Origin: Takakia lepidozioides
Lineage: Eukaryota > Plantae > Bryophyta
Direction: 5' to 3'
NCBI GenBank assembly: GCA_030704615.1
Contig: JAKLZA010000054.1
Location: 1 to 25,000 of the forward strand
Length of the DNA: 25,000 bases
Part shown: positions 58 through 25,000 of the stretch, piece by piece
How the letters are laid out: each line of letters begins with the position of its first letter
Position numbering within the stretch: the stretch's first letter is position 1
Program-made: the position numbers and the translations under genes
Notes under the pieces: generated by a model
What the model was told of the DNA's origin: nothing
The model's input: only the letters and a program-made list of their open reading frames with translations
Databases searched by the model: none

Positions 58-245
58 CAACCAAAAGTACTTGAAATTCGTTTTAGCCATATCTCATCAT
101 TTTTTTTCCACATAGCCTATGACCAGATTTGAACCGGAGACCTTTCCCTTGATATCTCTCCTGCCGAGGCTCCAACCATTGTCCCAAGAATGCCCACTTT
201 GCAATTTTTTCGTGAATTTCCAGCAACCCAAAGTACTTGAAATTC
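58..245 (+). repeat. 22-bp dispersed direct repeat
   Basis: CAACCAAAAGTACTTGAAATTC (58-79) and CAACCCAAAGTACTTGAAATTC (224-245), one mismatch. Confidence 0.75.
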
Positions 246-784
246 CACATCTCCCACACCGCAGGTCCAAAAATCGTGAAAAGCCGGTGCACCCCTCCTC
301 GTCGAGGACTTTCCAACGGGACCAAGCACTAAGGGTGGGGCCTTGCAGTTGGGGACATCTCAAATCTACAAAACAAACGTCTCGATTCATATATCCATTA
401 TCATTTGATCTCTGAATAGATGAATGATGCATAGACAATCAGCCATGAATAAAACACATTAAAAACATAAGGTGCATCTGCTCAGCTGGACCCACTCAAG
501 GTATAAGGTACTTCATGCTGCATATGCATGCATACAAATGTAGTCACTGCTCAAGGCCAACAAAAAAAATGGAAAAATGAGTGTAACATGTGCCCCAACT
601 GGGAACTAAGAACTTTCATGTTCCCATTAACTCTCATGGGAACAACCCTTAAGGGCACTTTGGCCAACTTGATGCCTAGTCCCTAGTCCCTACCCTGTCG
701 GGCAGGGCCAATAAAACATAAAGTATACGGTAAGGTGAGTCCCCGACCGAGGGCATTCACTGATTTGAGGGAAATGTGTTCCAT

Positions 785-7366: not shown

Positions 7367-9548
7367 GGGGGGGGGGTTTGTGCTGTACCGGCAAGAGGAT
7401 AAGGTCAAAGGTGGTCCCAAGAATATCAGAGAGGAGGTGGTCAGCCACAAGCTTGACGTGACGAGAGGCCACGATGGTGGCCTCACTTTCTACAGAGGCT
7501 ACCACCACCTCCGCACCAGCTCTGCGAAGAACATCGACAATAATCACCACTTCCATTTCCTCACTTCCATGAGCCACTGGCACCAACACCTGCCATGCAT
7601 GCAATTACCAAGTCACACCAAAAGTTCACAAAGCTCTTTACTCATGACCAAGTACGCTGGTGTAAAGGGACTGGCTTACGGTAGGGACAGCTGGGGCAGA
7701 CCACATCTGTTCATTGTACTTCTGCTTTGCAAACTCCTTGGCATTCTCTGTCGGTAGCACCTGCATACCCCACAATGTTAGACTTCACCTCATGGTGTCT
7801 CAAACCATGCAGGCAGGAGGAACTAATCAAGGCTAAAAATTCCATTCACAAATTGAAATCTCACTTAGCAGCCAAAGAAACATGACCTTCTGTTCCATGC
7901 AATTAGTTCAGAAAGATATCTGTGCAGCTAAATATGCCATGGCAACACAAATTAAGCCCATGAGAGCACAGTTTGATCCACCCAGGGATACTTACATACG
8001 CACACACAAACACATACGCACATGCAAAGGCCCGCTCTCTGTCACTGCCGAATGGGAGTCAAAACATAACTGTTGTAGGGTTGTTTCTACAGGGCCAGGG
8101 GTATCTGCTTCAACAGAACTAGATAACAAACTAGGAATTCATGTCAAGCTCAAGATAGGAGTGGCAAAACCAGTAGATCTCTAGACGATGGAGTGGAGCG
8201 CACCAAGTTGGAAGATACATTTGTAGCCTTATCTGTGCCATACAGTTGTGCAACCAGGGCCAAAGCAAACTCAAAGGCAGTGCCAGGTCCGCGGCTAGTG
8301 ATGAGAACCCCATCCTGCACAACTTTCTTTTCCACTGCTGTCGCTTGCTTCAACTTGTCTGCAAAAGACGGGTGGCAGGTGGCCTTGCCCACCCTTACTC
8401 AGTCAGATCCCCCCTTGGGCCATTTAATAAAACCCCTTCTCTCCTCTTGTTCTTTGTGCATGCGAAAAAAGACGATTGCAAGCATGGATAGACCTACCTG
8501 AAGGTCTTCCAAGAGACCCCAGGTTTGTAGAGCTACAACTGGGGCAGCACACATGGCAGCATAGGGCCGCTGAGACTTGGCCTGGGATTCTGTGATTTTC
8601 TGCAGCACTTTCGAGTCTCGCAATCGCTCTGCACCTGGCATGCCCCCCTAGGAGCCAACGAAGCGAGTAAAAACTCTCCAGTATTGGAGAATTTGTCTTC
8701 AGCATTGGACTATCACAACTACACAATGCAAGAATATCAGCTCGAATTACCGGGTGTCAAAATCACGCTGCTCAAGCCTGCAATTGTTAAGTTAGTCACA
8801 ATACAAGTTAACAACGAAACGCAAACTGGAATTCAACATTCCAATGTCTTGCTACCATCAATGCATGTTTCCGCTTATAATGAAAGCGTGAGGGTACCCA
8901 AGCTTCCAAAGGACAAAGACCCAGGGATCTTACATCAAAGAATCGAGCTTACTTTGAAGGGCTAGTCCTTCCAAAAAAAACAATGCTTCGCATCATTGGC
9001 AAGTGACAGTGTGTTTGCATTTCTTAATTTCTCTTCTGCAGCCCGGCGAACATATGCAGACGGCTGTACCACTCTTCACCTTCCGCCTACGCAAGCCAGC
9101 AGGCACTGCAGCAAGCAAGAAGATACGCGAAAATAACAAAGGCAATGAAGCTGCAGCTTACCGGTAGAACCACAAGGTCAAATTGCTGGCCCTCACACGC
9201 AGAGATGAGAGTATCAGCAACCATCGTAACCTTTCTGGAAGCCACAATCTGCAGCTCGTCTTCTACAGAGGCGACGGTAACATTGGCGCCAGCCCTGCGC
9301 AAGATGTCAATGAGAATCACCGCCTCCATTTCTTCGCTACTGTTTGCAACTGGCACCAACACCTTTCTCTCCACAGATGGATCCATCACAAGCCGGCGCT
9401 CTGCCGCAGCGTCTACAGATACACTGGACACACACCGGATGTGCCTTGGCCTAAATGCACAAAGTGCAGGAAGGCGGGTGAAAGACGAGGTGCTGCAGCG
9501 CCAAGAATACGATGCAGGCCAAGAAAGCGTTTTGCAGGCCAGCGCCAT
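6083..9548 (-). CDS. DJ1C: DJ-1/PfpI family protein with two DJ-1 domains and a predicted plastid transit peptide (DJ1C-like), 7 exons, ~448 aa
   Basis: Exons (minus): 9548-9162, 8647-8498, 8383-8204, 7760-7680, 7589-7389, 6537-6397, 6289-6083 (1347 nt, all GT-AG, all phase 0). Two repeats of VLVPVA..SEEME.V...D.LRRAGA.V.VASVE, LPGGMPGAERL, A(M/I)CAAP, ATCHP.F, TS.GPGTA.EFALA. S/R/A-rich N-terminus MALACKTLSWPASYSWRCSTSSFTR. The DJ1C versus DJ1A/B subfamily call is by recall of motif style. Confidence 0.9.
6783..7177. mobile_element. GC-rich non-autonomous foldback element (MITE-like or Helitron/Helentron-like) in DJ-1 intron 5
   Basis: IR pair 1: CACTACGTTAAAAGCAGGTGTGGCGGATTCT (6783-) versus AGAATCCGCCCCACCTGCTTTTAACGCCAGTG (-7078). 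IR pair 2: CCAGTGAACGGGCCGCGTTGGCCGACTCTGCCCTGT (7073-) versus ACAGGGCAGAATCGGGCAAACACGGCCCGTTCTCTAG (7141-7177). CpG-rich compared with the flanking intron. No clear TSD. Confidence 0.65.
7336..7376 (+). repeat. (AG)n microsatellite plus G11 run beside the DJ-1 exon 5 donor
   Basis: Read directly. On the transcript this is a C-run followed by (CT)n just inside the 5' end of intron 5. Confidence 0.9.
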
Positions 9549-12124
9549 CGCACCGCCTCTCTCTGTCTCTCTGAGAGTTCGGACACACGGAAACAAAGAT
9601 TTGGGTCTTTCATTTGTTACATTTCTTGCTACATTTGTGGGGTGTGTTTGCTTTTCTTCAATTGGGTTGTATACTTTGGAGCTGTGTAAACATACAGTTG
9701 AAAATTTCATGCAACTTCAAAATGGATCCATCAATGATGGACATCCTCACAGCTTTGAGTTGCTGGATCATGACGGCTACCTAACATGACGTTGATCACT
9801 GTGGGGTGATGGTCTCTTGTCTCTTCCTGCTACATTGCTTGATCCCAGATAACTGGGACTAGGAAAGGTAAGAGCACACAAGTGAAAGGCTACACACTGT
9901 TTGTGAGACTCGTGTTAGTCTGGATAGCAAGGCAATTTGCTTATATACAGACACCCTCTTCATCAGTTCTGCAAACTTGATCTGTGAAGTTGCCAGTAGA
10001 CACCTGGCTACACCATAGATTGAATATGGGAGTGGTCGCTTCAATCATGTTTGTGAGCTGACTTGCAAACTTCGAAAGCAGAATTCGTGCTTATCCAAAA
10101 GTAGAGATAGAGCAAGCTGGAATGCACAACAAACTCAAAATAAACACTTCAAACCTGAGTGAAAGAAAAGCAGTATGCCTTGCTGCTTTACAACAACAAG
10201 TGACAAGTGACAGATTTACAAGCCTGACATTTAACCATTGGAAACTGTCTCTAGATAAAGACTTTCCTACAACATCTTATGAGTACATTCTTCTCTCTCT
10301 ATCTCTCTCTCTACCCACCCCCGGCACTACACTGAAATTTAAACTCAGGGCGGGAACCCTACCTTTGAACAACAATAAACAGATGCAGAGAGGACGAGGA
10401 GACTGTAATTGCCCGATGTCCGAGCAGCCTGAAGACAATATCCATTTTCTTTTCCTACTTCCCATCGCTTCTAATTGTGTAATGCCCCAGATGAACTAGT
10501 CTATTACATTGGATGCATTGTATGGAAGCTAATTTGTACATAAAGAATTTGCCTACTCCACTTCTGGTCAGTCAATTCAAAAAACGGTTGACCAAGTTAC
10601 TGGAGCAGTCTTCCTTATTCATGACTGCATATTCCAACAAAAGTTAACTAAGCTCTGTTCCAACTTATCAAATAGTCTGAGGCATGTTGCACCTAGAGAA
10701 ACCAAAATCCGTACCTTTCAAAAAGCATACGGCTACTTGGTAGATGTTGTTGCTTAAGTAGAATGGTGAAGTTCGTTCATTGCCTTCCCCAAGCCTGCTG
10801 AAACCAATTGTCCTTGCCTGGAGATGTTCTTCAAGTTTTTTTGCTGATCTCTATAAGTCGGTTCTGCATGGGGAGCCGTTCCAGATTGTTGTGACCAATA
10901 TGAAGGAATTGGAGAGAAACGAAAGCCTGTAGTTTCATGGCTACAGATGAAACCACAGGATTTTATTCCCCCTCAACTGCATCCTGTTGGTCACCATCCA
11001 TCTGTAACGGCTCCTCAACAGACTTGATGCCACCTATCTGATATGAAGGATCAGATATAGTTGAAGAAAACCATGTTGGGCTACTTGGTGGCTCCCACGC
11101 CTCCAGACGGCCAAACAAATCCAAGCACACGTTCAAAACAGGCTTAACCCGGGTAACTGCAGATCCAGTAGCACCTCATCCCACGCAAAGCTGGGATTCA
11201 GAGATTTGAAATAGAATGTGACTCAACCGAGCTGTAACTCTGGCTGCAGTACTGCATTTCTAAAACACTGTACACTACAACACAAAACCAGTGGACAACA
11301 TTTCCCTCAAAGATTTATAGAGTCTTCTCACTCTCTATTGTATACTGGTCTGTTATCTGTGTAGGTGGAGTCTTTGAGGTTTCACATACAGGATCAATAT
11401 ACCATCTATGCAAACAATATGAGGGAAATGTTAATGTCGTAAACTGATCAAACCATTACCATCTATGTGACGTATACTCTTTCAGGAAAAGTTGCAAACT
11501 GGCATACAATCTCTTAGAAATGTTTTGGTGCATATTGGCACAAACCAGTATTTAGGCAATGTGTACACTTCTACTGTAACTTATGTATCATTTGTGTAGC
11601 TCTCCGGCAGATATTACTGTAGGTAGTCTTTCAGAAAATGTCATATAGTAGTCTGGTAAGTGAAGCTCCATTTTGAAGATCCTTGAGGTAGAAGCACATT
11701 GATGGGGGTCATCTACAGGAACAAAGAAAAACCTCAAACGGACCGATAAAAGTGAGCTCAGCTTTGACCAACCTCAAAAGGTAATATGTACATAGACACG
11801 CATTTTGTCATAGAATTTCATGGGCATTGCAGAGGATAATCAAGCAGCCACAACCCTATTCAAGCTGCACTGCCCAGGTGCTTTCCCATTGGAAGTATAG
11901 CAGGCAAGAACATATTGGAACTTCCAACCCTGGATCAGAAAAATCCACACCTGGTCCCAAACCCGGTAAACCCGCATGTAGCCCGATGCTTGCTTTCCAC
12001 CACATAAATTCATCATGTGAGAGAAAAAGTACGTGACCACTCAGTGTCAATACATCGCATAAGCTGCCTCCAGCCGTGCAAGAAGGAAAGAGGCGGATGC
12101 AACCCTAAAGATGACGACAATCGA

Positions 12125-12556
12125 TTACCCCGGCCCAACCTTGGGAATATCATAATGCTCGCTAAGATTTGCTAAGTACTGGTTAAATTCTTCAACCCTA
12201 TCGCGATGAGACTTGCTTGCCAATTTGGCCAGCCGACGCACATCCAACTTGCCTTTCTGTTCAGCATACCTCTTCTCCGCAGGAGTGCGGTGGTCCTCCA
12301 AAACAGCCAGTTGCGTCTCCCCCCTTCCCTCCTCCCCTTCACCATCATCCCGACCTTCCGACCCAGGTTCGTCCTCAAAAGACTGTGTGGGAGACAAGCT
12401 CCCGTCCTGGCCGGCCAGCAACAGCAACTGCTGCTGCTGCTTCTCCCTCTTCTTCTTCTTCTTCTTCTTCTTCTTCTTCTTCAGACCACCTGATTTCACA
12501 TCCAGCGCCTTCCCCTTCAACTTCAGTTTCCCCCCCACCACATTGTTGTACGACAT
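12125..12556 (-). CDS. FAM32A: FAM32A-like / DUF1754 small nuclear protein, single-exon CDS, 143 aa
   Basis: MSYNNVVGGKLKLKG...poly-K...TPAEKRY...ASKSHRDRVEEFNQYLANLSEHYDIPKVGPG* matches the diagnostic FAM32A N-terminus and C-terminus. ATG 12556 is preceded by TTTAGCAG|G, a likely 5'UTR intron acceptor. Confidence 0.92.
   Translation of the reverse strand: MSYNNVVGGKLKLKGKALDVKSGGLKKKKKKKKKKKREKQQQQLLLLAGQDGSLSPTQSFEDEPGSEGRDDGEGEEGRGETQLAVLEDHRTPAEKRYAEQKGKLDVRRLAKLASKSHRDRVEEFNQYLANLSEHYDIPKVGPG
12449..12481 (-). repeat. (AAG)11 coding microsatellite encoding poly-Lys in FAM32A
   Basis: (CTT)11 on the + strand, adjacent to a short (CAG)n encoding QQQQ. Confidence 0.9.
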
Positions 12557-12751
12557 CCTGCTAAACCGACCTGGTGTCAAATCCAGCACCCCACACTTCA
12601 ACCCTCACTTCACTCCTCCTCCCTCCAACATCAAACCAGCTGCTGAAATACCCAAGCATCCCTGTGGACAACGCACGTTCTCTTCTCCTCCCTGCGAGCG
12701 ACCATCGCTCGCTTTCCTGCACCTCCTCTTCTCTCTCTCTCTCTCTCTTCT

Positions 12752-12805
12752 CTTCTTCTTCCCAGTCTTTCGTAATAGCTTCTTCTTCCCAGTCTTTCGT
12801 AATAG
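12752..12805 (+). repeat. Perfect 27-bp tandem duplication
   Basis: CTTCTTCTTCCCAGTCTTTCGTAATAG x2 (12752-12778, 12779-12805), next to a (CT)n tract. Confidence 0.9.
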
Positions 12806-14038
12806 CGGTGTTTCACGTGGAAAAAGATCAGGATGATACTTCGTTCCATCCATCTAACTGTCCTGACGGTTACTTATCCACTTTCTGTAGGAATATTCGT
12901 TATCGTGCACGAGTGCCGGCCGTTGCAGGAGGAAAACGACAAGAGCGACGAGGTATTATTCGTAAAATAAAAACAGAATAAGAATGTATTCCGGGAATGA
13001 TCGTATTATTTACCGCAGTCGTCGGAGTCTCGGTGTTTCCGAGAGAGAGAGATCTCATGTCGTCTTGCAAATCGTGCTGGAGCGATGGGGAGATGGTTAG
13101 GAGCGGAGGGGCGGATGGCATTGTTGAGGTGCTTCTGAGTGGCAGCTGCAAAGTTCCTGGAAGGTTTGCTATGGCACTGTCGAGGTATGACTTCGCCAGC
13201 GTTTCGACAACTCTTTTTGAACTCTTTGCAATCTATCGACATTGCAGAGATTTGGTCTGTATGGGGCGCTGACAGAATTCAATTTGGTTGAGGGATTTTG
13301 TGAGCAAGTCATTTTCCCGTCAAGGTTTGAGCTTGGTCTTGCTTTTTGCTTTCCTAGCAATCCGAGAGGTGAATCCGTTCTCAAATTGTTCAGCAGCAGG
13401 ACAATCTCCTGTTGTTGATTGTACCATGCGTCATGCGGCGATCCATTTTTCAATTCAGATTTCGCCAGCGGTAGGGTCCCATGGAGGAGGGAGACAAGCA
13501 GAGTTGTTCACTTCCACACTACTATGCTGCTCTGAGTCCTACGCTTGGTGGTCACTTTCTGGTTGCCATTGCTAAAAAGGGATTGAGAGGCATGCACGAC
13601 GAGCGTACTCCAGCGGAGTATAGCTGCAGGATAAGGAACTCTGGCTGGTTGTCGGGGTTGCCAACTGGCTATCGCGATTCGTTCGGGGAGCCAGCTGGCT
13701 TCTGCAGATTATGCACCGCAATTATGATGCTCTAGAGGGGAAATGTGGCCTGTGAGGGTCAGTGGCTCTGTCATTTCTTGCGAGTGCTTTCTGGATCGTG
13801 TGTTGAAAGGATGAACTGTTTCCAAACAACAAGGTTCAAAGTTTCATTGGGATGACTAGTTAGATTTTGTCCGGGAGTTCATGGTTGATGGGCAGCGATC
13901 GATAACTGCAATGCCCCTTCCAGAGACTCGATTTCACAGCTCTTTTCCGTGCCTGTGAATTGCTCTCTCTCCCCTCAGTTCTTACAAAGTACTGCATGAG
14001 ACTCGCTCATGCTGTAAGTAGTCACTGCTTTCTCTCAT

Positions 14039-15633: not shown

Positions 15634-17428
15634 ATGGATATACAAGGAGAGAGCAGGAGGCTGATAGCAGATGAGGCGGGGGTTTCAGTAAGAGCAGGAT
15701 CGGGAAGGCCACAAGCATCAAAGCAAGAGTGGCCAATTAAGCTTTTGGGGTATTTGGGGTTGGGAGTGTTGGTGGGACTGATAGCAAGCCTTCGTATGGT
15801 ATACTCCGGGAGACTGACCCCTTATGCTGCATGGACCTCTAATTCGGTTACTCCTTCCTCACGTGTGCTTCCTTCTCAGGACTCCCAGGCTATGCATCAT
15901 AGTATCTCAGATGATGAACATATGTGGCAAACAGCAATGTCACCACAGAGGATCCGTCATAATATGTCAGATGATGAGCTTCTATGGCGAGCATCGATGG
16001 TACCACAGAGGCCCAGGATCCCCATCAAGCGCACCCCTAAAATTGCCTTCATGTTTCTTACAGTTGGACCCTTGCCCCTGGGCCCACTATGGGATCTTTA
16101 TTTTCAGGGACATGAAGATTTTTTCTCAGTCTATGTTCATGGACTTCCTGGCTTTGTTCCTGAGACACCACAGACATCTGTATTCTATGGACGCCAGGTG
16201 CCAAGTCAGGTGAGCTCCAAGCCACATGCTGGAAAGCAAACCCTACCAGCATTGTCACATGCTGGTAAGCCCCTACTGACTAGGTTGTTTTCTCGTTAAG
16301 TCGATTGATACCAGTCAGGACTGACTAAATAAACTTTCACAGCTGGAGGACATCTGTGTTTTCTGTAGCACACGTGATTGGATCATATTGTTTTAGATCA
16401 CCGTCTAATAGTATCTCCAGTTTCCTTGTAGCAAATTGCAGCAGGTTGTGGAGGTGAAACACAAAGCCGCAGAGTTTGTAAGAAAGGTCCTCTTTGCAAT
16501 TGACCAGATCACATCTTCATGCTATCCAGGTCTAAAACTTTTTAAGAGTTTCCACCGAGGATAGCCATATGGCTTGAGGGTGCCAGGTTTTTTTTTCCCT
16601 TTTTTCCCCCCAATTTGGGTTTTCCTGAAGAGGATGATCTCTACCAAGAAACAGACAATGCACCCAGTACAGCATTAATTGCTAAGAAGCTCCAAAGCGT
16701 CAGACAGTGCCAACATGTAGAAATGAACCATGATCGCCTTGCTGGGAGTGATCTTCCACTTCTGTTGATGCTATGCCATTACTGCTCTGTCAATGTAGGA
16801 GGCAAAGTGGGGTGAAATTTCAATTATCGATGCTGAAAGGCGACTGTTGGCCAATGCCTTGCTGGATTTTTCAAATGAGTATTTCGTCCTCATTTCAGAA
16901 ACGTGTGTGCCGCTCTTTAATTTCACTTTCACCTACGACTACATTACAAACTCAAAGCAGAGCTTCATTCAGTTCTTTGATGATCCAGGGCCCCATGGGC
17001 GAGGCAGGTACAACCCACAAATGTTACCAGAGGTTTCTCTAGATAATTGGCGCAAAGGCAGCCAGTGGTTTGAAGTGAATCGAAAATTGGCCATTTTCAT
17101 TATTGCAGATGTAAAGTATTATCCCAAATTACGAGACTTTTGTAAGCCACATTGCTATGTAGATGAGCATTACATACCCACTATGTTGTTTATAGAATTT
17201 CAGTCAGAGCTGGCAAGTAGGAGCATAACATTTACTGACTGGTCAAGGGGGGGATCCCATCCCGCCATGTTTGGGAAGGCAGATGTAACAAAGGAATTTC
17301 TTACACACATTCGGGAGGATCGGAATTGTGTTTATAATGACCAGCCAGGGGAAGTCTGCTCGTTGTTTGCTAGAAAATTTTCTCCAAATGCTTTGGAGCA
17401 TTTACTAAAGCACTCACCATTTCCTTAG
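15634..17428 (+). CDS. Core-2/I-branching beta-1,6-GlcNAc-transferase-like protein (GT14-like, DUF266/BC10 type), type II membrane, 2 exons, ~401 aa
   Basis: Exons 15634-16209 and 16799-17428 (CAG|GTGAGC ... TGTAG|GAG). TM LLGYLGLGVLVGLIASL. Motifs HNMSDDELLWRASM, PKIAFMFLT.GPLPL.PLW, WGEISIIDAERRLLANALLD, FVLISETCVPLFNF, WRKGSQWFE, CYVDEHYIPT, TDWSRGGSHP, LFARKFSP. Confidence 0.93.
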
Positions 17429-17920: not shown

Positions 17921-17976
17921 GAAATGAAATGGTACTTTATAATGTCTGCGGGAAGCTCAAAGTGCTTATAGGACAA
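17921..17976 (-). mobile_element. Diverged extreme 3' fragment of the same LINE (copy D)
   Basis: The reverse complement TTGTCCTATAAGCACTTTGAGCTTCCCGCAGACATTATAAAGTACCATTTCATTTC aligns with the 3' end of copies A-C with several substitutions. Confidence 0.8.
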
Positions 17977-17982
17977 GAGGAA

Positions 17983-18343
17983 GAAATGAAATGAAATGGT
18001 GCTTTATAACGTCCGCGGAAAGCTCATAGAGCTTATGGGACAAAATGGAAGAACATGAGAGAGGAACAAATCCAGAAACCACAATTAATGTTCTAGCGAT
18101 TGTCTAAGGGTGAAGGCCTCGTGCAGGTAGGCTGCCAAGCATTTTTGACCCTCATAGTGAAAGACATCAGTGAGAGTTTGGGTTCCACTGAATAAACAGT
18201 GGAATTTCCCACGGATCTCGTAGTATAGAGGGCAGTAGAAGAAGTGTTCTTCAGTTTCAATTTCCTTGCTGTGCCCTATGCAAGCTGGACATAGGCGGTC
18301 CTCCCGTTGCAGGTTATCCCATCTGCCAGTCTCTATCCGTAGG
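17983..18343 (-). mobile_element. 5'-truncated LINE copy C
   Basis: LRIETGRWDNLQREDRLCPACIGHSKEIETEEHFFYCPLYYEIRGKFHCLF..LRQSLEH* (intact C-x2-C..H..C knuckle), followed by the 3'UTR and (ATTTC)3 tail. Homologous to copy B. Confidence 0.88.
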
Positions 18344-18925
18344 AAAGAAAAAGAAAGTAAGAGCCACAAACAGCCGAAAGCAACTCTGCTGGAAGGCTCC
18401 AGGAGGGCAGCTCCGAACTGCAAAAGTTTGGAGGCTCCTGATTCCAGACAGAAGCTGTGTTTGGCCAGTGCAATGCTCAACTTGTACTCCTGAAGGAGTG
18501 AAGGACTACCATCTTCACTTCGTTGTGCGCTTCGGGATCTATTTCTTTGTCATCATGCAATCCAAGCAGCTTCATATTTGATCTTTCCTTCATAATTAAC
18601 TTGAAGGATCTGCCAATTCCAAAAGCACAGGGGACCACCACTACTGCAGTGGGCTAGCCGAGATGGAAAGTTATCAGAAGCTTGGGCTTATGTTCTGGGC
18701 CTATGGAGGGCCTCTGGCCTGTTTTGCTGCAATTGTGGCCTCTTACCATTTGTGCATCCTCTGGCTGGTGGAGGTTATCTCAGAAACTTTTGAAGCCAAT
18801 ATCTTCAAAAGCTTGGATACTTCCACCTTCAGCTCATATCTTACACCAGACTCAAGTGTTCACATGTCTATTTGAAAAAAGACAGTGAGAAATAGTGCCT
18901 GAAGTAGAAGTTGACATTGGTGCAG

Positions 18926-19894
18926 CTACTTGCCGATCGTTGTGGGAAATAAAATTCTATCCTGATACAGCAGACCAAGATGCCCTTCTGCTATGGGGCT
19001 CCTCAAGTTGACACCTAATGTCCAGATCGGGTGAACTTTCTTTCCGTGGTAAGATAGCATCTGGTCGAAGTACATCTTCCAAGGAGGGTTGTCTATCATG
19101 TCCACCACCGTGTTCATGGACGCTAGAAAGATGACAGCTTTCCATTTGGTAAACCCAAATGCATGTGCACCAGTACCACTACACCTAGAACCTAAATGCA
19201 CATCAAACAATACCACCGTCGTGGCGTCTGAGCAGTTCACAGGACCAGTGATCCCCAAGTACACCATGCCATCCCCTGCAGCAACGTCCAAGCCCTTTGC
19301 TAGCACAATTTGAGCTGTTTCTGGTGTCAAGGATGGGTGTAACTGAATATCGTCCTCAAAGAAGAACCTCCAAGAATTGTCATCGCAGCTCTTGTCGTCC
19401 ACAAAGCTTTGCATGATATCTGCAAACGCCATGCGGTTGGAGTATACCTTGAGGAAGAACCCATTAGCCGTGTGGTAACCTCTGGTCCCTGTGAACTTCT
19501 CCAAGCCGCTTATAACTTCTGTTGATTGAAAGGATGGGGGTATGTGCCGAGAAACCACAAAATTCAATTTCTCTAGGACAGCTTTTGTGTGATTGTAACG
19601 TTCATCAATCATGCTTAAAACTACTCCTTCAAAATCTTCAAAATCCAGGGGAACAGTTGTTGTGAAATCTGTTGTATGATTCAAATCACGTGAGTGAACA
19701 GTTATCCTTGTCATGACTCCTTCAAGACGTTGGCCCACAGATGGTAGGATGCCTACAGAAGGCTGCAGAAAAGTGTTAACCATGCCGCCACCTTGCAGAA
19801 GATTACGTGTGACGATCACACAGATGCAAAGCACCAGCCCTGCTAGGACAACCCCTTGCACCAAGAAACGCAGGTTCAAAGATGTTGGAAGCAT
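18926..19894 (-). CDS. Type II membrane protein with intronless CDS, putative GT25-like glycosyltransferase, paralog 1 (322 aa)
   Basis: Uninterrupted ORF with Kozak-like GCCATG, collinear with the 21633-22595 paralog. N-terminal hydrophobic anchor FLVQGVVLAGLVLCICVIV. Motifs GVVLSMIDERY, RFFFEDDI, GMVYLG, GAHAFGFT, YFDQML. The CDS call is strong; the GT25 assignment is moderate. Confidence 0.75.
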   Translation of the reverse strand: MLPTSLNLRFLVQGVVLAGLVLCICVIVTRNLLQGGGMVNTFLQPSVGILPSVGQRLEGVMTRITVHSRDLNHTTDFTTTVPLDFEDFEGVVLSMIDERYNHTKAVLEKLNFVVSRHIPPSFQSTEVISGLEKFTGTRGYHTANGFFLKVYSNRMAFADIMQSFVDDKSCDDNSWRFFFEDDIQLHPSLTPETAQIVLAKGLDVAAGDGMVYLGITGPVNCSDATTVVLFDVHLGSRCSGTGAHAFGFTKWKAVIFLASMNTVVDMIDNPPWKMYFDQMLSYHGKKVHPIWTLGVNLRSPIAEGHLGLLYQDRILFPTTIGK

Positions 19895-21632
19895 GGCTAT
19901 CTGCTGAGCAGGGTTGGGTTTGCAAGAGTGGTGTCGAAGTTATTGAGATATAAATCTGTGATGCACACACTACCAAATTCATATCAGTGAAGAGTCCCCG
20001 AGCCCAGGAATTTAATGAATTCTGCCTCACATAAACTGTTGATTCGCTTGAAGGTTAGATGTTCCTCACCAATTTCAAGTCCAAGTTAGAGGATGACTTC
20101 TCGTGGGTTACTTCGCGAATTGCTTCAGTTTGTCATTTTGTCCGAGGTGAGCTCATGTGCATAAGCCATAACCGGCCATAGGATGAAGGTCAGAGATCTG
20201 CGTCCACCCAAAAGGACAAATTGACTGAAAAGCATGATGCCATCTGGATAGGCGAAATTTGTCTAACATGTAAGGGTAGATCAATGAGCGATGCTTTGAC
20301 TAGGGAGCCGGGTGTTTGAACAGCGCAACTACTCCAGATCCAAGCACAGAACTGAAAAGAATAGTTGTTAAGCACTGGGACTTTGTCTGAGATTCAAGTG
20401 AAGGAGCAAATAGCGCGATGCAATGGCAAAATGCATATATACATTCTTTGTATCATGCAATGCCTCTTTCAACGCTTTTCTTTCTCCTCAAGATTTCAGA
20501 GGTGTTGATTTCGAACGTCACAAGCAAGCCTGTTAGAATTCTGCTCAATTAGTAACATGATCTTGACATGTGTGAAGTACCTCTCCTCTATGTTCACAGG
20601 GAATCTCCTATTTGCACCCTTCTCTCTCTCTCGTGATCTTGCCTTCACTAGACAATAATGGCCAGCAGCCACGAATACGTCCATTTGTCTGGCATATTAA
20701 CCTTCATACAGAATAATCGTGCGCACATAGCTCTTGAAGTCGTTATCATTTCAGCCTCCGACTACTTTCGGCCATCCTCACTGTGCTGCGTTGCTCCTTT
20801 AGTATCGCCTGCAATGCGTGGAACGTACGGTATCCTTGTCATTCCTTCCATTCCACGAGAGAGAATGTGAGAGAAAATGTTTACGTATTACATCATGGCC
20901 ATTTTTTTGTAACAACACCTTCCTGCATTTGATACAGGTAGTCGGATTCGAATCCAAAAAAACCCATCAATTCGATCTCCCCAGAGATTTTCCCTACAAG
21001 ATCATTCCTGTTCTTTCCCGATGATTCTCTCATGTCTGGGTTGTCCTCGGTGTGCATGTTGTCGGTACTCTTGAGGGGAGGTTAGGTCTTTGAGGTACTG
21101 CGCTAGTGTGGGCAGTTATATCCATGGACTCAGGATAGCAGGTTCACAATCACGGTATCAAAAAACGATCCTAAGGTGCCTAACTATCTCGTGTCTAAGA
21201 AAGTCAGGCTTCACACCATCAATTGATGGCCACGAGACACAATACCCCCTGCAGCTCAAACCAAATACTCGATAACTCCTATCCAGCTCAGAGATCATGT
21301 ACAGTACAGAGTAGTTATGTGCAATATGCAGCGTGCCACGTCTTAATCACCTGGCCAGCAACTCGCACGGCTAATCTTGCTTTAGAAACAGTACGTCCAA
21401 GGAATATTGTAAACATCTTGGTCGTGTACAGAGAATAGAGATGGTAAACACACCATCGTTTTGATGCAAATCTACTGCTACAAGGTAACTTTATTGCAGA
21501 AACAAGGTGCATGCAAGCTCACATCTCACTGAACTGCTAAACAAGTTGCTCGTCAATCACACCATGTCACTGCTTGAATGAGAGTTGAAGTTGAAGTTGG
21601 AATTGGGGTAGAGCATGATTGCGAGCTCAGAT

Positions 21633-22595
21633 TTAAGTTCTGATTGTTGAAGGAAACAAGACTCTATCCTGATAAAGCAAACCAACATGGTCAGCATCTA
21701 TTGGGCTCCTCAAGTTCATTCCTAATGTCCAGATCGGGTGTATTATCCTTCCGTGGGCATACAGCAACTGATCAAAGTACATCTTGTAACGAGGACTGCC
21801 TATCAAGTCCGCCACTTTGTCCATGGAGGCAAGAAAGAGGTCAGCTTTCCATTTGGTGAACCCAAATGCATGTGCACCAGTACCACTGCACTTGGAACCT
21901 AAATGCACATCAAATAATACCACCGTCGTGACATCTGAGCAATGCACAGGACCGGTGATTCCTAAGTACACCATGCCGTCCCCTGCAGCAACAGCCATGC
22001 CATTTGCTAGCACAATTTGAGCTGCTTCCGATGTCAAGGAGGGGTGTAATTTAATATCGTCCTCAAAGAAAAACCTCCAAGAATTGTCATCGCACCTCTT
22101 GTCATTCACAAAGCGCTGCATCACATCCGTGAAGGCAATGCGGTTGGAGTGTACCTTCAAGTACCCCTCACTGTCATAAGCTTTCGAGCCAGCTTTAAGC
22201 TTCTTCAAGCCACTGCTAACTGCTGCTGATTTGAAGAAGAGGGGTTTGTGCCGAGAAACCACAAAATTCAATTTGTCCAGTACAGCTTTTGTATGATTGT
22301 AACGTGTGTCAATCATGCTTAGAACTACTCCTTGAAGAAGAGTGTCTTGAAGATTGATTGGAAGAGCTTTTGTATCATTTGTTGTATGATTGAAGCCACG
22401 TGAATGATCTGTTATCCTTGTCACTACTCCTTCGAGGCGTTCTCCAAATATAGATGGTAGGACGCCCTCAGAAGGCGGAGAAATACCGCCACCTTGTAGA
22501 AGATTATATGTAGCAATCACACAAAAGTAAAGTACCAGCCCTGCTAGAATAACCCCTTGCAATACGATACGCAGGCTCAACGATGCTGGAAGCAT
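21633..22595 (-). CDS. Type II membrane protein with intronless CDS, putative GT25-like glycosyltransferase, paralog 2 (320 aa)
   Basis: Uninterrupted ORF. Shares identical blocks with paralog 1 (CDDNSWRFFFEDDI, AAGDGMVYLGITGPV, VVLFDVHLGS.CSGTGAHAFGFTKWKA, HPIWTLG.NLRSPI, GLLYQDR) despite many synonymous changes. Confidence 0.75.
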   Translation of the reverse strand: MLPASLSLRIVLQGVILAGLVLYFCVIATYNLLQGGGISPPSEGVLPSIFGERLEGVVTRITDHSRGFNHTTNDTKALPINLQDTLLQGVVLSMIDTRYNHTKAVLDKLNFVVSRHKPLFFKSAAVSSGLKKLKAGSKAYDSEGYLKVHSNRIAFTDVMQRFVNDKRCDDNSWRFFFEDDIKLHPSLTSEAAQIVLANGMAVAAGDGMVYLGITGPVHCSDVTTVVLFDVHLGSKCSGTGAHAFGFTKWKADLFLASMDKVADLIGSPRYKMYFDQLLYAHGRIIHPIWTLGMNLRSPIDADHVGLLYQDRVLFPSTIRT

Positions 22596-23430
22596 GGCGA
22601 TCTAAGGATGGCCGGGTTTGTAGGCATGACCAGTGTCGAAGTGCATAACTCGAGGTACCTACACCCCTGTGATATGTACAAAGCTATCAAGATTCATGTC
22701 AATGACCAGCCCCAGAGCCTGACCTCAGTGATAATAGCTGCAGGCCTCACAAAAGTTCATTTGACAAGAGGCTTCAAAATTCCCCGCAAATCTCAGATAT
22801 CCAAGGTTAGAAATGAACTCACAGGTACGAAAGAAGTGCTTCATTTGTGATCTGAGGTGACCTCACGAACTATGATCTGCCTCCATTGCGGTGGAATATA
22901 TTGGAATGAAGATTATGATGTGCAATCTGAACAGGCAAAATCCTTGTAGTTAACATGTACAAGGGTCTGAAAGACAATCGAGCCGTACTTGGCTACATGC
23001 CGGGGGAATACATCAATTAAACAAGCGCATAACTGCGAACCGATAGGGAGAGGTTCAGATCTACATGTATGGCTTACTTGCGGCCAGCGTCACTGTGCTG
23101 CGTTCCTTCCATCAGATCCCTTAGTCCATCACCTGCAATTTAATTCAAGAATTAAGACCTTCGAGTCCAACATGATAATTATCTGGACCAAATAGTTTCT
23201 CTTCCTGCAGCCCTGGAGATCTGTCCGGATTACACATTCAGAAATCACGTGGAAAAAATTTCAGGGCCTCCCCCCTTGGTCTTCATGGAATACCAAGAAC
23301 CGTACCTGTTCAAGCCCATTGGCGCAGATCCTCGAGAATGGGACAGTCTCTTTGTCTTTTTAGCACAGATGCTATCGCTGGCACTTTTGAATCACTTCGT
23401 TCCCTTGTCTCTCTCTCTCGGCCACACTCG

Positions 23431-23739: not shown

Positions 23740-25000
23740 TCAAACCAAATGATCATCCCATCCAACTGCCTGAATGACATCCGACAAAGAAATGGGTGTG
23801 ACATTGGGAAAAGCAGGAAGATGAGACGAAGCCATGCCATCCACAGCGAGTGGAAGGAACGCATCTGTGGGATGACGGTCTTGATAGTCTCGTTGCTTGG
23901 TTTGTGCAACAATCAAAGCGACAATGCCTTGGAAAGAGGCCGAGCGAGAAAGTAAGTCGGATCGAGTGGGATCGGCAATAACAACATCCGCAAGGGTGCG
24001 CAAACCATCTCGAGATAGGACAATGTCGACTCGCCGACAAGTGGACTGAGACGTACGAGAAGGAAGCATGTGAGTTTGCTCCTGCAATACATGGAATCCA
24101 GCCTCTCGAGCAACAGAGGCGATGGCGTCCCGCACAACATCATGGGTCGCTGTACGATCTCCTCCACATGGACAACGAAGGAGAGGAACAGCAAGTGGAT
24201 CAATGGGTTGGTGACAAACACAGCGCTGTAAGCCAAGCACAGAAGGATGTGGTAAGCCAAGACGAATGCGGAGAGCCGTGGCAAAGATTGGAGATGACAA
24301 GCGAAACGGTGTGATAATGGGTCTTACGATAAGCCACGCACCCGCCTCTGGTCCCGCGCAAAATAAGAGCCTGGCACGATGCACATTAGAATATGCATCA
24401 GAAAGCATGCTAGAAAAAGTTTGTTGGTGCACGCGATCCACGATGGTCTCCTAGAGATGGTCCAAGCCCCGAGTAACCAGCTGCTCAAATGGCGGAAGGC
24501 AAGCCGGCACTGATGGATGAAGAAGGTCCCCGTGCAGATCGGAGATGTTGTTGGAATGAGGGTGAACCGTTATCCATGTGAGCAATCCATGAGTAGGGGT
24601 TGTTGGTCGCATAGAAATCGGGACACAAGGGCTGGAGCAACTAGAGCCCAACTGCCGAGGAAAGCACAAGGAGCAGTGGTGGCAGTGGAGAGTAGACCCA
24701 CTCCGCCAGTGGACAAAGGTAAGGTGGCTTGTTGCCGAGGTAATCCCCTTGGGAACCATCCATAGCACTGGCCCCAGTAAACGACCAAAAACCCCCATAA
24801 TGTGAGCATCAAACTGCGACAAGGACAGCAAGAATTCAGCGGTAGGTGGAAAAGACCGTAAAAGGTACGATGGTCGTTGAATGAAACACCTTGTGAGAAT
24901 ACCATAGGCGACCTGTAAAGGGATTTGTATAGGATATCTGGAAAACTCGGATAAATTATCTGTTTCAGGGTAAGTCATACTACCGGCGTCAGCCCTTGCC
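23740..25000 (-). mobile_element. Degenerate CRE-like non-LTR retrotransposon (post-RT region, zinc finger, restriction-like endonuclease), continues beyond the window
   Basis: Frameshifted pieces: QATLPLSTGGVGL...AFLGSWALVAP (24570-24905); AGAWL..P...F.TALRIRLGLPHP, CVC..IDP...LLRC..GG.RTATHD.VRD, E......RRVDIV...G..TLADVVIADP...K...Y, FLPLAV (23740-24441). This motif order matches RLE-bearing CRE-clade elements. Confidence 0.8.

Follow-up and report, generated by a model that had tools for sequence, protein, structure and literature searches.

A tandem pair of predicted GT25-like, membrane-anchored glycosyltransferases in the moss Takakia lepidozioides

Glycosyltransferases of family GT25 are well known in bacteria, and members of this class provide the frame for the two tandem paralogous genes discussed here, A and B, which lie within positions 1 to 25,000 (the whole stretch analysed, further called the window) of contig JAKLZA010000054.1, assembly GCA_030704615.1, of the moss Takakia lepidozioides. 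One of the closest described systems is formed by the bacterial lipooligosaccharide/lipopolysaccharide (LOS/LPS) beta-1,4-galactosyltransferases (PDB 8xkd/8xc8), which we take to stand with the LgtB/LgtE/Lic2A class. The second is human COLGALT1 (GLT25D1), in which cryo-electron microscopy showed Mn2+ bound by E435-x-D437 and the diphosphate of uridine diphosphate (UDP) bound by R354, with D522 as the probable base (PMC11897130). The third, mimivirus R655 (Acanthamoeba polyphaga; PDB 9crz), is a putative GT25-type protein that was described as a homolog of human GLT25D1, its activity not being established (PMC9546862). One inventory reported GT25 from Micromonas only and placed it among families without plant entries (PMC3797821), in agreement with the original prediction, made from the letters of the window alone, that GT25 is absent from Arabidopsis-type glycosyltransferase repertoires.

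The products of genes A and B are about 13-14% identical to the GalT-C domain of COLGALT1 (PDB 9evj, 8zgc) and 13-14% identical to R655. They are predicted single-domain type II membrane proteins, whereas COLGALT1 is a soluble two-domain protein of the endoplasmic reticulum (ER), R655 is viral and has no N-terminal anchor, and the bacterial enzymes are cytoplasmic-face proteins with neither signal anchor nor stem. The uridine-binding Ser of COLGALT1 'LSH' is out of register with the moss family, which possesses invariant blocks of its own (C..C pairs, G.CAHAFG and GxLYQDR), outside the columns aligned to GT25; as to the acceptor of COLGALT1, no collagen hydroxylysine substrate is known from plants. 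The moss homologs PHYPA_013175 (Physcomitrium patens), KC19_8G074400 and KC19_4G160700 (Ceratodon purpureus) and CY35_02G188100 (Sphagnum magellanicum) are 40-51% identical to the window proteins and have the same anchor-stem-domain plan and all the motif residues. Unlike the window proteins, they keep a pair of cysteines, C216/C242 in the numbering of A, and the two loci inspected in Ceratodon and Sphagnum hold neither a tandem pair nor a GT14 neighbour, both of which the window has.

We consider it likely that A and B encode functional enzymes of the secretory pathway, namely metal-dependent, inverting transferases of UDP-hexose, which belong to a GT25-like family that was inherited vertically within mosses. 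This reading builds on open reading frames (ORFs) that are intact and under purifying selection, on the fold and the nearest relatives, and on the conserved motif residues and the position in the tree. Literature searches that combined GT25 with moss and other plant-lineage terms retrieved no description of these moss proteins, GT25 being named together with moss only in PMC3797821 and in a Physcomitrella preprint. The apparent novelty is a GT25-like moss family with several copies that is invisible to Pfam, the enzyme class itself being known; nothing is overturned, since fold, motifs and probable chemistry belong to that known class. For mosses, this means a multi-copy, selected, membrane-anchored GT25-like family that standard domain models have missed, and research on bryophyte walls and glycoproteins gains a concrete set of candidate enzymes, one of them in the tractable model Physcomitrium.

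The gene pair, its fold and its motifs

The two genes, and those parts of their products on which assignment to an enzyme class depends, are located as follows:

18926..19894, minus strand: gene A, coding sequence (CDS) without introns, 322 amino acids (aa) plus stop; predicted GT25-like type II membrane glycosyltransferase, from the ORF, homologs, an AlphaFold model (predicted local distance difference test, pLDDT, 87) and top structural matches that are GT25
21633..22595, minus strand: gene B, tandem paralog of gene A, 320 aa plus stop, 69% identical to A and sister to it (support 99-100)
18929..19639, minus strand: predicted GT-A catalytic domain of gene A, residues 86-322
21636..22346, minus strand: predicted GT-A catalytic domain of gene B, residues 84-320, aligned to A with every near-invariant family residue kept
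19349..19357, minus strand: E180-D181-D182 of gene A, predicted metal/UDP-sugar binding E-x-D motif, aligning to FEDD of R655 and COLGALT1
22056..22064, minus strand: E178-D179-D180 of gene B, equivalent predicted E-x-D motif, from alignment

The two intact paralogous ORFs of 322 and 320 aa announced by the original prediction are both present at these positions on the minus strand. In pairwise alignment the proteins are 69% identical and 82% similar from end to end, and the similarity at the DNA level is restricted to the CDSs, with none detected in 800 bp on either side; since it ends at the CDS borders, the duplication must be old. Comparison of A with B gave 0.47 synonymous (dS) and 0.16 nonsynonymous (dN) substitutions per site and a dN/dS of 0.35 (Nei-Gojobori), with 0.30 in the catalytic part, so that both copies are under purifying selection, which is the outcome of the paralog comparison that had been proposed as a check of function. 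By sequence comparison, the tandem duplication is confined to the lineage of the window and is old (dS ~0.47).

The AlphaFold model of the gene A product (pLDDT 87 overall, predicted template modelling score 0.75) consists of one helix at residues 6-34, a disordered stretch at residues 37-80 and a domain at residues 88-322 with pLDDT >90. The top Foldseek matches were a bacterial GT25 beta-1,4-galactosyltransferase, 8xkd (expectation value, E, 6e-8), COLGALT1 and mimivirus R655, and in the structural ranking the top ten places were all occupied by GT25 chains, 2-4 Z units ahead of the remainder. The combination of AlphaFold and Foldseek, suggested along with the original prediction, has thus returned a GT-A fold, to which GT25 enzymes come nearest among solved structures. 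In the ESM Atlas, a search by shape led to clusters of PF01755, the Pfam family of GT25, and to GT11-GT25 fusions of Nucleocytoviricota.

An exhaustive phmmer search that started from the window protein collected 157 relatives, including P0111 at E 1e-13. PF01755 is matched by 11 of 60 distant relatives (P0111 reaching 33.5 bits, with the gathering score at 24) and is the sole glycosyltransferase domain matched within the homologous region of the distant members. When a profile of the distant relatives was searched against PDB, seven distinct sequences were found, all of them GT25, with R655 at E 2.7e-5, COLGALT1 at 0.006-0.009 and bacterial GT25 at 0.014. It could be argued that the resemblance to GT25 reflects the general GT-A fold only and that the proteins represent an independent lineage with other chemistry or another donor, nearer to GT13/GnT-I-like enzymes, to GT2 or to another family. 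That is distinctly improbable, given that every PDB match of the homolog profile is a GT25 chain, that GT25 fills the top ten structural ranks with the lead mentioned and that no other glycosyltransferase domain than PF01755 was matched in the distant members. Judged from profiles and from the modelled fold, the unnamed family is a divergent sister of CAZy GT25.

Conservation of residues was counted over a 64-member family alignment. The motifs quoted in the original prediction (VVLSMIDERY, YSNRMAF, FFFEDDI, MVYLG, GAHAFGF and YFDQ) were all found in the proteins, and in the GT25 order that had been proposed for them V.LS..R, FEDD and YLG fall on real GT25 columns. Within VVLSMIDER, which has the first strand (beta1) and the Arg of GT25, S94 is kept in 58/64 and R99 in 61/64 members; in the profile alignment the R99 column falls on R354 of COLGALT1 and the FEDD of the family on the FEDD of COLGALT1. 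The end of the FFFEDD strand aligns to LVFEDD (COLGALT1) and LVLEDD (R655), which supplies the E-x-D of GT25, and E, D and D of E180-D182, where a contact with the metal is predicted, are kept in 63, 62 and 63 of the 64 members. All the near-invariant residues of the family (S94, R99, S152, E180, D181, D182, G209, G214, H244, D277, G307, Q311 and R313) are present in both paralogs, and for this reason the window proteins are read as probably active enzymes.

Relatives within and beyond the mosses

The homologs that carry a species name are all moss and come from Ceratodon purpureus (chromosomes 2, 4, 8 and 12), several Sphagnum species (chromosomes 1, 2, 6 and 15) and Physcomitrium patens (PHYPA_013175). 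They are annotated as 'hypothetical protein', with one Sphagnum troendelagicum entry that was automatically named 'Hexosyltransferase'. About 3 kb from the homolog on chromosome 8 of C. purpureus (L027 13706-15251) there is a neighbour with a weak FUT8_N_cat (fucosyltransferase-like) match. In Ceratodon and Sphagnum, gene length equals coding length (849 bp for 282 aa and 1005 bp for 334 aa), which makes the lack of introns the norm of the family and no peculiarity of the window.

Two maximum-likelihood trees were built by quick searches, with support from the Shimodaira-Hasegawa-like approximate likelihood ratio test (SH-aLRT) and without bootstrap. The window pair is monophyletic (99-100) inside a clade that holds all the moss sequences (SH-aLRT 99 and 97); in this clade at least two paralog groups are old, Sphagnum and Bryopsida being represented in each, and the pair branches on its own next to the Sphagnum chr2/chr6 group and the Ceratodon/Physcomitrium group. 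On this evidence the family is older than the split between Sphagnum, Bryopsida and the lineage of the window, and at that time it already lacked introns, carried the anchor and comprised two or more paralog groups.

The observed nesting is what one would expect if the genes descended vertically from the common ancestor of mosses, and it contradicts a recent transfer. A recent or lineage-specific horizontal acquisition from a bacterium, virus or fungus was an idea of the original prediction, to which the intron-free CDSs amid spliced neighbours lend some appeal, as does the fact that the GT25-like family is mostly bacterial or viral by annotation. It is barely credible in view of the place of the pair in the moss clade (support 97-99), of its 40-51% identity to moss proteins that are likewise intron-free, of dS 0.47 between the copies, which implies long residence in the genome, and of base composition, since GC content is even along the window (0.41-0.51) and at third codon positions (GC3) amounts to 0.50 in A and 0.44 in B, as in the neighbours. 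Furthermore, a scan of 185,579 bacterial and archaeal genomes, one per species, for the moss signature WR[FI]FFEDD gave 8 pattern matches and no true relative; the scan tests the signature of the moss clade only, not the presence of GT25 in bacteria. The author of the original prediction had proposed that orthologs following the species tree across Viridiplantae would speak against transfer; by that measure the idea is weakened as far as mosses go, where paralogous homologs occur in Sphagnum, Ceratodon and Physcomitrium and the window pair nests among them.

Outside mosses, the closest relatives are unnamed metagenomic proteins. Two of them were placed on gene-dense contigs with Arf, GRAM/VASt, ISWI-type SNF2, Clp protease and mitochondrial-carrier genes, a gene content that points to compact cellular eukaryotes. 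One distant family member was found in a marine eukaryote transcriptome set, and a language-model search of the Atlas labels the nearest clusters 'GT25, Chlorophyta', a label that rests on 2-6 typed members and serves as a lead only. Giant-virus relatives were detected on 23 contigs, with 24-28% identity and in a clade separate from the moss proteins. As these homologs indicate, the family is common to mosses, compact-genome microbial eukaryotes and giant viruses. In P0130, P0161 and P0111 (968-1393 aa) the GT25-like domain is fused with TylF-type sugar O-methyltransferase, CmcI-like methyltransferase or GT11 fucosyltransferase domains, which suggests glycan-assembly 'megaenzymes' in protists or giant viruses.

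A gene family that algae and giant viruses have in common offers a clean case for the question of retention versus transfer. One may ask, was it retained from the green lineage and lost outside mosses, or did a moss or bryophyte ancestor acquire it long ago from a giant virus or microalga and expand it, so that its absence in other land plants means late arrival and not loss? Moss genomes reportedly hold insertions derived from giant viruses. Such an ancient acquisition, possible though unlikely in our view, would fit with the named land-plant homologs being all moss, with the intron-free genes at the Ceratodon and Sphagnum loci, with relatives occurring both on the 23 giant-virus contigs and in viral Atlas clusters, and with GT25 being given as absent from plants (PMC3797821). 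On the other side, the giant-virus sequences make a clade of their own at merely 24-28% identity, the closest non-moss relatives sit on cellular-eukaryote contigs (Arf, GRAM/VASt, ISWI, mitochondrial carrier), the window has spliced host genes and no viral island, and the seeming absence from vascular plants, liverworts, hornworts and streptophyte algae was judged among matches that mostly carry no taxon name. Of the two, we favour, only moderately, a family kept from the green lineage and lost outside mosses over an ancient transfer.

A more far-reaching proposal, which we hold to be rather unlikely, is that mosses alone among land plants kept and expanded a GT25 sister family missed by Pfam-type models and common to picoalgae and giant viruses, that a giant virus or an alga long ago passed this family to the moss stem, and that the family adds a moss-specific beta-hexose linkage to a wall glycoprotein or polysaccharide. 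If this were true, the target could be a hydroxy-amino acid of a protein, by analogy with COLGALT1.

Membrane anchor, cysteines and the proposed reaction

The following features concern the topology and the cysteines of the two proteins:

19799..19867, minus strand: predicted signal anchor of gene A, residues ~10-32, Kyte-Doolittle 2.88, model helix 6-34
22500..22568, minus strand: predicted signal anchor of gene B, residues ~10-32, Kyte-Doolittle 2.57, aligned with A
19247-19249 and 19169-19171, minus strand: lost Cys pair, gene A residues 216/242, Thr/Gly in A and likewise at the matching columns in gene B

In both proteins an N-tail of 9 residues, with Arg at its end, precedes a hydrophobic 19-mer that begins at residue 10 (Kyte-Doolittle values as listed) and is followed by a stem of ~50 residues that AlphaFold leaves disordered. 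Hydropathy and model therefore support the short N-tail, single transmembrane segment and stem of the original prediction, whose N-glycosylation sequons are also in place: NHT at 72 and 101 and NCS at 220 in A, NHT at 69 and 100 and NDT at 73 in B. The description of the enzymes as 'Golgi-adapted' had to be given up, as the N-terminal anchor occurs family-wide, in 24/24 moss-clade members of the first tree, in 20/39, that is about half, of the other eukaryotic relatives and in 4/17 giant-virus ones; being found throughout the family, it is no adaptation of the genome of the window.

The cysteines, likewise said to be conserved, give a divided picture. Three lumenal Cys are common to the paralogs (170/168, 221/219 and 238/236 in A/B), but the near-universal pair of family columns 216/242 is absent from both: C/C is found there in 60/64 members, and Thr/Gly solely in the two window proteins. 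In the model one of these columns closes a strand and the other opens a different one. The two resemble a disulfide whose cysteines disappeared together, and since A and B both lack them, the loss predates the duplication. A second Cys pair (221/238) is retained in the window proteins.

This loss raises the possibility that the proteins have a GT-A fold without transferase activity, as a pseudoenzyme, a lectin-like protein or a scaffold, or that they are unexpressed, decaying relics, for which one could also quote the RNA runs that gave nothing on either CDS and the retroelement fragments that flank the pair (18085-18480 and 23740-24978). We regard this as highly improbable, since both ORFs are intact after dS 0.47 with a catalytic dN/dS of 0.30, and the near-invariant residues, among them E-D-D, R99, H244 and D277, are all kept in both copies. 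Purifying selection continued after the Cys pair had been lost, which makes decay unlikely.

If A and B are functional transferases, the following course may be proposed, in which activity, donor, acceptor, localisation and expression are predictions. The products would be single-pass membrane proteins of the secretory pathway, with the N-terminus inside and a lumenal part that is a GT-A glycosyltransferase. A UDP-hexose would be bound via a divalent metal coordinated by the FEDD residues E180 and D182, R99 would touch the diphosphate, and the sugar, probably beta-linked Gal or Glc, would be transferred with inversion, for which D277 is the likely base. The acceptor may be a hydroxyl on some glycan or glycoprotein in the lumen of the ER or Golgi. 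Gal or Glc is the likeliest guess for the donor, by analogy with the activities known for GT25 enzymes.

Several results weigh against functional GT25-like enzymes of vertical moss descent. A Pfam scan of both window proteins with E up to 10, the profile check that had been suggested, matched no family, PF01755 included; PF01755 likewise gave no match at E up to 1 for the Physcomitrium, Ceratodon and Sphagnum homologs, and a PDB sequence search with the window protein alone gave no match. What stands of the predicted GT25 enzyme is a GT-A glycosyltransferase for which the fold, as well as transitive or profile sequence evidence, makes GT25 enzymes the closest known relatives, but not formal membership of GT25. 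The uridine-contacting Ser of the GT25 'LSH' (COLGALT1 S415) falls on A156 in both profile alignments. The family's invariant S152 is situated four columns upstream of the S415 column and aligned to Gly, the register of the helix being uncertain, and YSNRMAF, which had been equated with 'SH..W', fails at residue level, so the 'LSH..W' block of GT25 was not recovered. D277 is kept in 63/64 members, and its distance within the superposition of 84..322 on 336..573 is the expected one; no residue-level alignment covers it, and its role as base relies solely on this range-level structural superposition. The Cys pair of 60/64 relatives is gone from both proteins, which could affect stability. The genes were present in no run recorded as RNA; small RNA-like runs labelled with this species yielded a single 336-nt contig, which touches only 22822-22900 and 20769-20792, outside both CDSs, and bears neither way on expression. 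Finally, among the mostly taxon-unnamed matches none was named as liverwort, hornwort, vascular plant or identified alga, and 'vertical' holds within mosses only.

Neighbouring genes and repeats

Other features of the window are:

15634-17428, plus strand: Core-2/I-branching (PF02485, GT14-type) gene, exon ORFs 15634-16299 and 16847-17428, corresponding to profile positions 1-63 and 79-250
9087-9710, minus strand: DJ-1/PfpI first exon, profile positions 1-68 of 165; its long N-terminal extension, rich in Ser and Arg, resembles an organelle transit peptide
12125-12601, minus strand: FAM32A-like gene, apparently single exon, with a long (AAG)n run giving poly-Lys
18085-18480, minus strand: 131-aa ORF with a C..C....H....C motif (CPACIGHSKEIETEEHFFYCP), no Pfam match, between the GT14 gene and gene A
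23740-24978, minus strand: two consecutive ORFs of 233 and 175 aa upstream of gene B, without Pfam match, probably retroelement remains

The claim that the pair has spliced neighbours was confirmed for the GT14 gene, which is split over two ORFs, and for the DJ-1 gene, whose first exon covers profile positions 1-68 of 165 only, the FAM32A-like gene being apparently of a single exon. A giant-virus island was ruled out by these ordinary spliced host genes around the pair. The GT14 gene is convergent with gene A, and three predicted glycosyltransferase genes lie inside 7 kb; a functional cluster of GT14 and GT25-like genes was considered and dropped, as GT14 is not syntenic at the Ceratodon or Sphagnum loci. 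The ORF at 18085-18480 resembles the C-terminal zinc knuckle of a non-LTR (long terminal repeat) retrotransposon ORF2. The strand opposite to the FAM32A-like gene (12213-12836, plus) contains spurious long ORFs rich in Phe and Ser, and at 17921-18043 a 56-nt unit occurs twice in tandem, the copies being 88% identical and spaced by 67 nt.

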